Part shown: positions 30,858 to 32,575 of the stretch, in pieces
How the letters are laid out: each line of letters opens with the position of its first letter
How positions within the stretch are numbered: the stretch's first letter is position 1
From: Orbicella franksi
Lineage: Eukaryota
Reading direction: 5' to 3'
Length of the DNA: 64,000 nt
Assembly (NCBI GenBank): GCA_964199315.1
Contig: OZ116700.1
Coordinates: forward strand, 22,320,001 to 22,384,000
Translations under genes and position numbers: made by a program
The notes under the pieces: generated by a model
The model's input: only the letters and a program-made list of their open reading frames with translations
Told to the model about the DNA's origin: nothing
The model's database searches: none

Positions 30858-32575
30858 TTAAACTAGTGGCATTTCGAGTCCAGTCCTTTTCTTGAGAGAA
30901 TCTGCTGTTCTTCCCTCTTGAAATTTGAAATCGGAATCTCTCAGAATGGCCGTCCATTGTCCATATCCGTGCCTGTTAATTCCTCGCCTGAGAAAATCGT
31001 CCTCGTCTGCCGTGAATTTCATCACCTGATGAAGTTTCCTCTGATTTCGCAGGTTCTCAGTGGGAATTACAATCTTCCTGGGGGAAGACAGGCTTGACTT
31101 TTCCATAGTTTCAACCGACAGTGTCGAGTTAGAAGTTGAACTGCCAAACCTCGCCTGTACATTTTCGTCCACCTCTAAACCCTTGCTTCCTTGAAGCTTT
31201 TGAAGACAATCGCGAGCCTTCACAGCAACTTCGCGCGATCTCCGCTTTTGATAGTGAACTTTGGCAACAGCAGAACTGTGTTTCTGGTCTTCCGACAAAA
31301 TCCTTTGCTCCTCGCTGGTGAGCTGATTGAGGCTTTCTGTCTCAACAATTGGCGATAACGCGTAGGATTAATGTACTTTCCAATAGCATCAAAAACCAGT
31401 TTGCTCATAATTTCGCCCAATTTACTGTGTTGGCCGCCATTTCTGTTGACGAGAATGAAATCACACTCGGGTTTGAGCAGCGGTCTGACGTAGGAGATGT
31501 AGCCATCGAGAACTTGCATGTTTGCATCGGTCAGAATCAAAGAGTCAAATCCATACTTTCCAGCAGTCTTGAACGTTTTCTGATCAATAAATCCACCCTT
31601 TTCCTTAGCTGTAACAATCATGTCCACCGTCAAATATTGATAAGTCATGGGATGCGACCCCTTCACTTTGATGAACAGATACATGGCAACGAATTTCGTG
31701 GCAAATGTCAAGTCTGAAGTGTTAACTTGAGCTGGACTCGATTTGCAAATCTTCACGGTATTTTCGTAACGCGGCAGATGAAATTTCACCACCTCCAACA
31801 ACTCCTCCATTGTTGCCCAGTGGCCTCTTGCTTCCAGTGTCTCAATGTCAAAATCTTGCGTCCACTGCAATCTCATCATTTTTGCAACCGTCTTTCGCGC
31901 CCTTTTGAGATACAACTCTGTTGCAGAGAACTTTCGAAGAACTGCCTCCGGCGCGCCATGAGGTTTTCTGAAGTCGATCATTTCAGAAATGGCATCTATG
32001 TAGCCTAAACGTCCACCATGTCCAAGCTTGCATTCGCCTTGTAAGTAGTCGATAAACTTGAACAACAAATTTGGAGAACACAAACTAAAGTCCACCACGT
32101 CAAAAGTCAACTCTTCCTCGTCTTCACAACAAAATCTAAAAAACTTAAAGCATCTTGTTACTATTTGTTGAGCTGCGCGATCTTTCGTGGAACCGCCACC
32201 ACTACCAGTCAACCATCTCGTGAATACTTCGCCAATGTCACACGACAATGAAAATGAGAGAAGTAACTTTCCGGCATGTTTTGTAGTCTCACTTGTTTGA
32301 TCTTGAATTGTGTTCACCATTGGAACATTTCTTGCTACCTTTAGCGAATCTGTGATTTCTTTCGAATTGGGCTTTTCATCGAAATAAAAGGACCAACTGT
32401 GCTTGGTATTAACGTGTTTTCTGCACCCTCTTTGACTTTGAAATCCACCATGGTCACACTCTTGTATTGGGCAGTGATACAAGCTGTCGGTTTCATCCTT
32501 TTCCAAGTGAAGCCGTTTTGGTTTGGGTGATGCTCCATCGATATCCGACCAATTGACCTTGCACTTCTTGCTCAT
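30858..32575 (-). pseudogene. C2H2 zinc finger - tyrosine recombinase - Myb/SANT (telobox-like) gene with a 1-nt frameshift
   Basis: CPIQEC...CRKHVNTKH; YR motifs KGS(H)P, FKTAGKYG, NPTRYRQ, QKHSSAVAKVHY; C-terminal FTADEDDFLRRGINRHGYGQWTAILRD...RTADSLKKR. ORFs 31220-32605 and 30858-31298 join by adding one base at ~31349 (CAA [A]TT GTT GAG). Confidence 0.82.

Follow-up and report, generated by a model that had tools for sequence, protein, structure and literature searches.

The window analysed here, a stretch of 64,000 nucleotides from contig OZ116700.1 of Orbicella franksi, carries on its minus strand a broken gene of about 571 codons, the predicted product of which combines a zinc finger, a tyrosine recombinase (YR) core and a Myb domain, and which lies within an internally deleted transposon copy (table 1). 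The gene is covered by two overlapping open reading frames (ORFs) in different frames, and the start ATG of intact relatives corresponds to window position 32575. To define the break we used as reference the intact gene at L010:10001-11719, the closest relative among the fetched loci. The window gene is 90.3% identical to it at the nucleotide level and differs by exactly one 1-nt gap, at about 31353, so that the sequence-only reading, which had postulated one repaired frame of about 570 codons, was right on this point. The two ORF pieces were searched separately, with the frame left unbridged, and all fold work was conducted on intact natural relatives.

A protein search with the longer piece recovered 794 relatives (best E ~1e-260), the majority of which are intact proteins of 564-575 aa. 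Hundreds of these intact relatives are 85-91% identical and share the same single-ORF layout of C2H2-like finger, YR core and Myb domain, a layout that is also seen in an annotated protein of the jellyfish Rhopilema esculentum (XP_065066523.1) and is retained by full-length relatives with identity as low as 36-38%. An exhaustive search returned 1481 representatives of clusters formed at 50% identity, 280 of which had E<=1e-30. The proposal that finger, recombinase and Myb belong to one protein is upheld by these relatives, in which the Myb domain is found inside the same ORF and not in a separate one.

Table 1. Features of the transposon copy in the window, with the evidence on which each is placed
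Feature	Position	Strand	Basis
Whole transposon copy, 4.3 kb, internally deleted, non-autonomous	29449..33776	-	terminal 15-mers shared with other loci
5' terminal inverted repeat, 15 bp, CATTTCCCAAAAATT on element strand	33762..33776	-	shared 15-mer
63-bp tandem array, 9.8 copies	32861..33479	-	terminus-like motif in each unit
Recombinase pseudogene (zinc finger + YR + Myb)	30858..32575	-	ORF listing and alignment of relatives
Minus-strand ORF, 461 aa	31220-32605	-	
Minus-strand ORF, 146 aa	30858-31298	-	
C2H2-like zinc finger (C35, C40, H54, H59)	32399..32473	-	invariant ligands; sub-threshold PDB matches
YR core-binding and catalytic domains (aa ~105-470)	31167..32263	-	AlphaFold pLDDT 84-97 over most of span; Foldseek
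First catalytic Arg codon	31652..31654	-	CAT (His) here; CGT/CGC in intact copies
Second-Arg box (N-P-T-R-Y-R) and frameshift at ~31353	31346..31369	-	alignment to relatives
TRF-like Myb domain	30885..31022	-	Pfam PF00249; best PDB profile matches TRF1/TRF2
Deletion junction	30703..30714	-	~3.8 kb of L010 (11855-15671) absent
298-bp tandem array, 2.1 copies, long AT-centred palindromes	29699..30328	-	counterpart of 265-276-bp array of full copies
3' terminal inverted repeat, AAATTTTGGGAAACG on element strand	29449..29463	-	reverse complement of 5' end
Flanking microsatellite, 3' end	29064..29447	-	(GAG)n on + strand, (TCC)n-type on element strand
CCT-rich tract, 5' side	33801..33895	-	24 nt from the 5' terminus

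The recombinase fold of the central region was recovered by structure comparison only. A Pfam scan of the window pieces, the intact proteins P0006/P0002 and 30 relatives gave no match at E<=10 to Phage_integrase, DUF3504 or DUF3435, and one match to Phage_int_SAM_1 at E 0.005. The catalytic domain went undetected when phmmer and the family profile were run against PDB sequences, as did the YR fold when hhalign was used to compare the family profile with the Cre and lambda Int sequences of phage records. A model of P0006, an intact relative, was built by AlphaFold with a 30-sequence alignment; its mean pLDDT is 81.8, and among its 50 best Foldseek matches in the PDB there are 46 tyrosine recombinases (probability ~1, target-normalised TM 0.42-0.57), including XerA, Cre, lambda Int, XerH and IntI. 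The viral structure library BFVD produced the YR picture again, its nearest matches being YRs of algal giant viruses. Judged by its predicted structure, the protein is a tyrosine recombinase having the two-domain fold, core-binding plus catalytic, and the assignment initially made from the letters is confirmed in this way.

Since the catalytic domain is invisible to the Pfam YR models and to PDB sequence profiles, the assignment of its residues (in P0006 numbering) rests on conservation and spacing. Across the family alignment the candidates are conserved as follows: R308 in 79 of 86 sequences, K336 in 101 of 107, R408 in 96 of 109, H433 in 92 of 102 and Y442 in 86 of 102. The motifs FKT (K336), QKHS (H433) and VHY (Y442), which had been selected as bearing the catalytic K, H and Y, are thus conserved in the relatives. 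The window motif KGSHP is KGSRP in relatives, with a CGT codon in five intact copies versus CAT in the window, which bears out the earlier suggestion that this His (the equivalent of R308) is an Arg decayed at a CpG codon. The frame of the window copy breaks in the second-Arg box, for which a replacement of HxxR by TxxR had been claimed. R408 is present in all 30 full-length relatives and T405 is nearly invariant, whereas position 403, which would offer a canonical HxxR, is H in only 64 of 107 sequences; in 27 it is N, the residue that the window has, and the others show T, S or I. The TxxR register is favoured by this pattern, though not proven, and the HxxR histidine would then be Thr in the family. 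A canonical HxxR in the form K-Y-I-H-P-T-R was considered and dropped when the wider alignment showed position 403 to vary and T405 and R408 to be kept.

The finger and the Myb domain flank this core. The finger pattern C-x4-C-x13-H-x4-H is invariant in 25 sequences, its ligands being kept in 44-48 of 47-50 representatives, and the AlphaFold model has short strands followed by a helix at this position (pLDDT 64-81). Pfam zf-C2H2_4 was found in only 2 of the 30 relatives, with E 0.12, below significance; the finger profile also remained below significance against the PDB (E>=0.12), yet nearly all its matches are C2H2 fingers. The predicted C2H2 finger stands as a ligand pattern while falling short of significance in either database. 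The Myb domain is basic (median pI 9.8) and exceeds the Pfam Myb_DNA-binding (PF00249) cut-off of 24.4 with a score of 29.2 bits; this Pfam match is found in 25 of the 30 relatives. Against the PDB, its profile matches TRF1 with E 6.5e-6 to 4e-5, TRF2 with 1e-3 to 8e-3 and c-Myb with 0.02-0.4, the best solved structures being TRF2, TRF1 and zebrafish Terfa. Like the telomere proteins TRF1 and TRF2, the family has a single basic C-terminal Myb helix-turn-helix with the loop motif K-F-x-x-(G/N)-R-T before helix 3; unlike them, it shows no association with TTAGGG repeats and lacks the telobox signature in helix 3, which reads L-x-x-R-A (A564 in 48 of 60 sequences, position 562 variable) versus L-K-D-R-W in TRF1. 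The helix 3 residues with which TRF proteins read TTAGGG are not retained in the family. The resemblance to telobox Myb domains noted at the outset holds for the nearest solved relatives but not for the signature itself.

The ends of the transposon were located by terminal 15-mers common to loci L001, L008, L009, L010, L012-L016 and L020. The DNA similarity of the window copy to these loci ceases at its two termini, and every full copy begins with an equivalent 15-mer (CGTTTCCCAAAATTT or CATTTCCCAAAATTT). In one assembly, six copies that are ~99% identical have both ends in common and different flanks, and the mobile unit extends from terminal repeat to terminal repeat. Full elements measure 8.4-9.1 kb and contain, from 5' to 3', a terminal inverted repeat (TIR) of 10-15 bp, the 63-bp array, the recombinase gene, a convergent gene for an SF3 helicase, a palindromic array of 265-298-bp units and the second TIR. 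Each 63-bp unit has four (G/C)TTCC pentamers in addition to a terminus-like motif, GTTCCCAAATTGG. The unit consensus is identical across six copies or subfamilies over its first 49 nt, and a variable stretch of 8 nt includes a TTAGG-like bit that is not conserved between subfamilies. The only genes within the mobile unit are those for the YR and the helicase, with no reverse transcriptase (RT) or LTRs inside. The helicase translation shows Walker A and B motifs, and its relatives match by Pfam DUF5906 (19/25), Parvo_NS1 (7/25) and PPV_E1_C (4/25); its AlphaFold model was poor (pLDDT 49.5) and was left out of the fold search. The same pair of genes occurs in the Rhopilema locus L019. Named relatives of the YR come from R. 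esculentum, those of its partner helicase from Montipora, Oculina, Acropora, Porites and Desmophyllum, and the nearest relatives of the window itself belong to cnidarian-type assemblies. The family is large (1481 clusters at 50% identity), and in at least one assembly its copies, intact and nearly identical, point to recent activity.

The window copy retains both terminal repeats, in TCC-type flanks, and has lost the helicase gene, which lies inside the deleted segment of ~3.8 kb. This copy is dead, having a frameshift and the replacement by His of the first catalytic arginine; these lesions together with the absence of the helicase gene render it incapable of transposing alone, so that it could at most be mobilised in trans. 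Scans of the window for Rfam families and tRNAs found nothing.

The flanks of the elements reveal a clear target habit. Tracts of (TCC)n are present on one or both sides of the window copy and of L001, L010, L011, L014, L015 and L016, with (TCC)34 and (TCC)44 as the two flanks of L014. The sister subfamilies sit in (TTC)n (L008 and L009) or (CTCTTC)n (L020), and in each of them the spacer of the predicted joined ends, discussed below, matches the target. At L015 two copies lie head to tail with only TCCTCC between the inverted arms; this is the sole arrangement resembling a circle junction that we have seen, and insertion beside an existing copy could also produce it. L012 and L013 lie outside microsatellites, retaining TCCTCC at the 5' junction and ATC only at the 3' junction, which implies that the hexamer may be part of the element itself or that the exchange tolerates mismatch. 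A further point against is the gap of 24 nt between the 5' terminus of the window copy and its CCT tract. The target of the family is polypyrimidine microsatellites, not telomeric repeats. The general notion that the recombinase is directed to a repeat is upheld, the element family being target-specific, while the telomere-like target suggested with it has to be abandoned: copies are found in (TCC)n, (TTC)n and (CTCTTC)n, and the window contains no TTAGGG arrays.

What, then, is the element in the window? The explanation that we regard as quite probable is that the locus holds a pseudogene for the recombinase of a Crypton-type transposon, present as a decayed copy with an internal deletion and most likely one of the cnidarian, microsatellite-specific CryptonV by virtue of its host group and target habit. 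Other readings of the same evidence need to be weighed against this. If the Myb domain aimed the recombinase at telomeric or telomere-like repeats, its best profile matches with TRF1 and TRF2 and the loop shared with them would be accounted for, and there is a precedent in nimaviral YRs with a C2H2 domain that insert in telomere-type (TAACC)n (PMC10871703). However, all readable flanks are TCC, TTC or CTCTTC microsatellite or unique DNA, none being TTAGGG; not even a TTAGGG dimer occurs in the window, subfamilies differ in the TTAGG-like bit of the 63-bp unit and helix 3 departs from that of TRF1, leaving telomere targeting very improbable. A matching crossover spacer in the element ends would explain the specificity at least as well as targeting by the Myb domain. 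The gene could instead belong to an endogenous virus-like element, either a Polinton-like virus or a giant element in the style of nimaviruses, given that full copies carry an SF3 helicase, the type used by small DNA viruses, and that the nearest viral structural matches are the YRs of algal giant viruses. Moreover, L001, L010 and L014 have ORFs for an FtsK/A32-like ATPase with a C2H2 finger that directly adjoin the element on its 5' side, and an ATPase ORF 34-37% identical to them lies at 22845-23594 of the window. We consider a viral origin improbable nevertheless, as the six near-identical copies bound the mobile unit at its terminal repeats within differing flanks and the ORFs inside the unit gave no match to capsid families by Pfam, a search that a divergent capsid could escape. 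The ATPase ORFs lie outside the repeats and are absent from most flanks, and that of the window is on the wrong side of the element with a LINE in between; their candidacy as a part of the element, beyond its shared ends, was dropped.

Neighbouring genes also evoke a retrotransposon of DIRS/Ngaro type, with an RT ORF at 26899-28800 and an endonuclease/PHD ORF at 23670-25040, 650 bp past the 3' end of the element. Yet both ORFs lie beyond the terminal repeats, run on the opposite strand and make up an ordinary LINE-type unit of endonuclease plus RT with its own relatives, and the RT is in no full copy of the YR element, so that this origin is the least credible of those considered here. Hardly more credible is a domesticated host gene, namely a Myb DNA-binding protein derived from a recombinase, or a decayed paralogue of it. 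Repeated domestication of Crypton YRs is on record for animals (PMC3212892), and NCBI labels the jellyfish relatives as ordinary genes for 'uncharacterized protein LOC...'; but this is a multi-copy family with terminal repeats, in which different loci hold near-identical copies and the catalytic residues are conserved, whereas domesticated DUF3504 genes have lost theirs (PMC3212892). Besides, the window copy is broken.

The preferred assignment to Crypton transposons agrees with the finding that the YR is the sole integrase of family elements. CryptonV was introduced for target-site-specific Cryptons of cnidarians (Kapitonov and Jurka 2012, Repbase Reports 12:2034), which PMC8869645 cites as inserting in microsatellites, and it is listed as a Crypton group in PMC4455052 and PMC5753468. 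Compared by description, the present family resembles CryptonV in being a YR-encoding DNA transposon with cnidarian relatives and microsatellite sites, L012 and L013 being the exceptions to this specificity. The element is probably of a known but barely described kind, Crypton-type and equivalent to Repbase's CryptonV. Its architecture had been deemed unusual: the combination of finger, YR and Myb is real, but a described Crypton family, CryptonV by description, probably covers it.

Other Cryptons are less similar. CryptonA and CryptonI (Kojima and Jurka 2011, PMC3212892) likewise have a YR as sole recombinase, no RT and non-autonomous deletion derivatives, but their proteins match DUF3504 and are described without a C-terminal domain and without terminal repeats (PMC3212892), whereas the present family has no DUF3504 match at E<=10 and possesses a Myb C-terminus, a finger N-terminus, TIRs and a second gene. 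[quoted passage not shown] The telomere-associated YRs of endogenous nimaviruses (Kawato et al. 2023, PMC10871703), again compared by description, share specific insertion into a simple repeat but reside on crustacean viral genomes of 280-400 kb, target (TAACC)n and have no reported Myb (PMC10871703). With Cre/loxP, Flp/FRT and lambda Int the family shares the fold and a predicted joined-end site formed by inverted arms and an 8-bp spacer, while differing in its low identity (~10-13%), Thr at the HxxR histidine in the favoured register and accessory domains of eukaryotic type (C2H2 and Myb). By analogy, the extra domains and repeated subterminal sites of the family recall the arm-binding domain and arm-type sites of lambda Int.

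These likenesses suggest how the Crypton-type element might move. The recombinase would excise it as a circle, the junction of which would consist of the 3' arm, A-TCCTCC-A and the 5' arm, namely an 8-bp crossover spacer between two inverted arms that the recombinase would bind, a layout like that of loxP and FRT. Because two microsatellite units are contained in this spacer, a matching crossover region would be available in any (TCC)n tract, and a TCTTCT spacer would serve the same role in the sister subfamilies sitting in (TTC)n or (CTCTTC)n. Such targeting by spacer homology is a model built on the element ends and is not proven. The zinc finger, the Myb domain or both may bind DNA in an accessory role comparable to that of the lambda integrase arm-binding domain, most likely at the microsatellite or at the terminus-like motifs repeated in the 63-bp array. 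The helicase would replicate the excised circle from the palindromic array. Taken to its full extent, this scheme would define an undescribed class of eukaryotic integrative episome, with an SF3 helicase of its own replicating the circle at a palindromic origin array and a zinc-finger/Myb YR both integrating and excising it through a lox-like site with an 8-bp microsatellite spacer; a change of spacer would retarget the element and the Myb domain would be an arm-type module shared with, or ancestral to, the Myb of telomere proteins. We entertain this wider reading only tentatively and think it rather unlikely. Should it be true, swapping the spacer between TCCTCC and TCTTCT would redirect the element to another microsatellite.

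To our knowledge, DNA transposons with a tyrosine recombinase are rare in animals and almost unstudied biochemically. Spacer homology, if true, would account for the confinement of a eukaryotic transposon to simple repeats that are harmless, and the family might provide a site-specific recombinase native to eukaryotes with a readable targeting rule. Although the window copy itself is only a fossil, its family offers a clean, testable recombination site with natural variants for different microsatellites, and its Myb and finger modules are a concrete case of accessory DNA-binding domains bolted to a YR core.

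By its predicted structure, the core of the protein encoded by the minus-strand gene at 30858-32575 is a tyrosine recombinase (YR), as the sequence-only reading had claimed, though sequence profiles are silent on this point. No Pfam YR model matched the core even at E<=10 for the two window pieces, the intact relatives or 30 aligned relatives, apart from one Phage_int_SAM_1 hit at E 0.005; searches of the PDB with a single sequence and with the family profile matched the Myb end only, and hhalign of the family profile against Cre and lambda Int gave no match. The AlphaFold model of the intact family protein P0006, whose residue numbers are followed here, has a mean pLDDT of 81.8, with values of 84-97 across most of residues 105-470. 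When the model was compared with the PDB in Foldseek, 46 of the top 50 hits were tyrosine recombinases, including XerA, Cre, lambda Int, XerH, IntI, a staphylococcal integrase and YopR (probability mostly 0.85-1.0, lowest E 1.3e-3). In the viral structure library, algal giant virus YRs, phage integrases and baculovirus VLF-1 match best.

In the alignment of thirty full-length or near-full-length relatives (33-93% identity), the invariant columns include K305, R308, P309, F335, K336, T337, R408 and H433, and Y442, T405 and R406 are conserved at at least 90%. Wider counts come from 150 representatives, many of which are fragments or pseudogenes: R308 is present in 79/86, K336 in 101/107, R408 in 96/109, H433 in 92/102 and Y442 in 86/102. 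The position of the second catalytic arginine can be read in two registers. One takes H403-x-x-R406 as a regular HxxR motif, with R406 kept in 92/111 representatives; it is less favoured on the alignment, given that position 403 is variable (H in 64, N in 27, T in 5 and S in 4). The other, proposed earlier as TxxR in place of HxxR, would place T405 (99/111) where the histidine usually lies and make R408 the catalytic residue. In Cre, XerD and lambda Int the second arginine usually precedes the His/Trp position by 22-23 residues and the tyrosine by 31-35. R408 lies 25 residues ahead of H433 and 34 ahead of Y442, close to these values, and because it is also present in all full-length sequences, the register with R408 and T405 is the one we favour.

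The gene in the window is split between two overlapping ORFs in different frames, the first reaching ...I-N-P-T-R-Y-R-Q and the second picking up at I-V-E-T-E-S... when read by eye. In a global alignment with the intact gene at L010:10001-11719, the closest relative among the fetched loci, the window gene is 90.3% identical and shows a sole indel, a single-base gap near window position 31353; the repaired frame of about 570 codons was therefore correct. The codon for R308 is CAT (His) in the window, whereas intact copies have CGT in four cases and CGC in a fifth, so that arginine does occupy the KGS-P position in intact homologs and the suggested CpG decay fits. With R308 replaced by histidine besides the frameshift, the window copy is thus doubly dead. 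The two ORF pieces were searched separately, and natural intact relatives were used for whole-protein analyses.

The larger piece matched 794 proteins, the best 120 of which are 79-91% identical and mostly 564-575 aa long with a terminal Pfam Myb domain. Searched exhaustively with HMMER, P0006 matched 1481 cluster representatives at E<=1e-3, of which 280 reach E<=1e-30. In the intact proteins P0002, P0006 and P0003 the frame is continuous across the window's break, and XP_065066523.1 of the jellyfish Rhopilema esculentum, 48% identical, is annotated as one protein; the Myb domain is therefore part of a single ORF in homologs. Three features recur in the thirty aligned relatives: the finger, with the pattern C-P-x3-C-x-H-x-G-F-x-S-x-R-G-C-R-K-H-x4-H, an extended conserved core and, after a variable, disordered linker, the C-terminal motif F-T-x-E-E-D-x2-L-x2-G-I-x-K-x-G-x-G-x-W-x2-I-L ... 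R-T-x-D-x-L-x2-R-A, with a Pfam Myb domain found in 25/30. The observation of a finger, core and Myb architecture is thus confirmed and, judging from the alignment, this architecture is real and old.

The N-terminal finger, which lies in a basic region, we call C2H2-like: its four ligands are invariant in 25 sequences and kept in 44-48 of 47-50 representatives, and a profile of the region gives only sub-threshold PDB matches (E>=0.12), nearly all of them C2H2 fingers, including Hakai, AEBP2, ZNF512 and Zif268. The Myb domain scores 29.2 bits with Pfam Myb_DNA-binding (cut-off 24.4), and it is basic (median pI 9.8), as would suit a DNA-binding domain better than an acidic SANT module. Its TRF-like character is fair as a resemblance, since TRF1 (E 6.5e-6 to 4e-5) and next TRF2 are the best solved relatives of the family profile, far ahead of c-Myb, MYB21 and CHD1, and the loop K-F-x-x-(G/N)-R-T ahead of helix 3 is common to the family and TRF1/2. 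However, helix 3 has L-x-x-R-A in the family and L-K-D-R-W in TRF1, so reading of TTAGGG should not be assumed.

The window resembles other loci from about 33900 to about 30865, and then again further down. One assembly has six copies that all encode the identical protein P0007; they agree at ~99% over 7.7-8.2 kb and have sharp common ends, TCCTCC-A-CGTTTCCCAAAATTT... at 5' and ...TTGGGAAACG-A-TCCTCC at 3'. The ends form a 10-bp inverted repeat in this group and 15-bp perfect inverted repeats in the window copy and the L008 and L020 subfamilies. In a full copy of 9.1 kb (L014:8534-17662), the 5' terminal repeat is followed by a 63-bp array with 14 units and by the recombinase gene; next come a convergent gene of 796 aa, a 276-bp array and the 3' terminal repeat. 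Both a Walker A motif (G-E-A-N-S-G-K-T-S) and a Walker B motif (I-F-I-D-E-A) occur in the 796-aa protein, and relatives of this protein match DUF5906 (19/25), Parvo_NS1 (7/25) and PPV_E1_C (4/25) in Pfam; one from Porites lobata is named 'SF3 helicase domain-containing protein', and others occur in Montipora, Oculina, Acropora and Desmophyllum. At the Rhopilema locus, too, the YR gene has a convergent helicase-like partner, which is spliced and was compared by tblastn only. This locus (L019, GCA_013076305.1, 10001-15937) has a 363-bp tandem repeat (12013-12945) between the two genes, all of it intronic to a Utp11-like host gene model. Compared with L010, the window copy lacks 11855-15671 and with it the helicase gene. 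The deletion junction falls at window 30703-30714, and L016 has a similar natural deletion. Among the sister subfamilies, L008:3752-8634 and L009:3752-8637 are short (4.9 kb) and without the helicase gene, and L020:8706-15483 has only its first 58 codons left.

Long palindromes make up the window's 298-bp array; their arms measure 41-53 nt and their loops 1-4 nt. In the 63-bp unit the first 49 nt of the consensus are identical in the window, L001, L008, L010, L014 and L016, and the following ~8 nt, including a TTAGG-like bit, vary (TAAGG in L008). Every unit holds GTTCCCAAATTGG(TCAT), which differs from the 5' terminus CGTTTCCCAAAATTTGGTCAT by only three one-base run-length changes and has the same orientation; three more (G/C)TTCC pentamers per unit echo GGAAC/GGAAG motifs beside the 3' end.

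Microsatellites flank most copies: (TCC)34 and (TCC)44 in L014, TCC-type tracts on one or both sides in L016, L011, L010, L001 and L015, and in the window a ~380-bp (TCC)n-type tract directly at the 3' end and, at a distance of 24 nt from the 5' end, a CCT-rich tract. In the sister subfamilies the flanks are (TTC)n for L008 and L009 and (CTCTTC)n for L020, with TCTTCT beside the arms. In L015 two copies of different subfamilies, ~91% identical, lie head to tail (451-8525 and 8534-17380), and their junction is the 3' arm, exactly A-TCCTCC-A, and the 5' arm of the next copy. The family is thus repeat-targeted, and the idea of targeting holds in this respect; its telomeric part fails. No TTAGGG dimer is present in the 64-kb window. 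The earlier interpretation was partly right.

The analysis shows the protein's fold and conserved catalytic residues, the element's termini and gene content, its microsatellite flanks and the subfamily-specific hexamers; on this basis a likely mechanism can be proposed. The recombinase would excise the element as a circle, whose joined ends would be inverted arms around the 8-bp spacer A-TCCTCC-A, a layout like loxP or FRT. Integration would proceed by strand exchange inside the spacer, and a microsatellite of the same unit would therefore offer homology for the crossover; judging from the three subfamilies, a new spacer would go along with a new target. L012 and L013, which lie in unique DNA with TCCTCC at the 5' junction and ATC only at the 3' junction, show that a simple rule of spacer homology is incomplete. 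Finger and Myb domain could be accessory DNA binders, with the terminus-like motifs of the 63-bp array or the purine/pyrimidine microsatellite as putative sites, the former by analogy with the arm-binding domain and arm-type sites of lambda Int. The helicase and the palindromic array might replicate the circle.

In the literature searched we found no mention of a YR with a Myb domain or of a cnidarian transposon combining YR and SF3 helicase. Among the Cryptons published from animals, CryptonA and CryptonI match DUF3504 and lack both a C-terminal domain and terminal repeats (PMC3212892), a description that this family does not fit. CryptonF carries GCR1_C as its C-terminal domain and has terminal direct repeats of 6 bp, a comparable design built from other components. 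CryptonV of Repbase's classification, described as a target-site-specific group from cnidarians and cited as inserting in microsatellites (PMC8869645), fits best by its description. Among described architectures the closest analogue is the YR family of endogenous nimaviruses, with C2H2, SAM-like and YR domains, which inserts in (TAACC)n (PMC10871703). The window copy is a fossil of a family of known kind. This family is large and mechanistically legible, and its intact near-identical copies suggest recent activity in at least one assembly.

Features of the window and related ORFs in fetched loci
Feature	Coordinates	Strand	Remark
Transposon copy	29449-33776
ORF, 461 aa	31220-32605	minus	recombinase
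ORF, 146 aa	30858-31298	minus	overlaps 461-aa ORF, other frame
63-bp array	32861-33479
298-bp array	29699-30328
PHD finger + endonuclease/exonuclease/phosphatase ORF	23670-25040	+	LINE part
Reverse-transcriptase ORF	26899-28800	+	ends ~260 bp from (TCC)n tract flanking YR element
C2H2 finger, then FtsK/poxvirus-A32-like P-loop ATPase ORF	22845-23594	minus
C2H2 + FtsK/A32-like ATPase ORFs elsewhere	L001:3056-4150, L010:7057-8414, L014:6855-8227
Second reverse-transcriptase fragment, 332-aa ORF	57029-58027	minus	RVT_1
Heptamer array (AACGGGG)	60376-60465		12.9 copies
Heptamer array (GGAATCC)	38912-38985		10.9 copies
Minisatellite, 52 bp	9238-9426
Minisatellite, 91 bp	47773-47952

Regarding the neighbouring sequence, a LINE-type retrotransposon at 23670-28800 (+) has relatives in assemblies of this kind, with identities of up to 95%. 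At three loci of different assemblies the ATPase gene adjoins the outside of the YR element's 5' end by the (TCC)n tract; the window paralogue, 34-37% identical, lies on the far side of the LINE, at 6 kb from the 3' end of the element. The ATPase gene may be part of a different mobile element, one in which the preferred microsatellite occurs. Just past the YR element's 3' end, L010:17307-18503, L011:18597-19817 and L001:13056-13716 contain a pair of ORFs (108 aa and ~270 aa) without Pfam match and 66-88% identical among the three, which could form one host repeat with the ATPase gene. Another repeated gene is a 401-aa ORF upstream of the YR element in L011 (1243-2448), to which window 46332-47451 (+) has a frameshifted or fragmented match, 29-60% over pieces.
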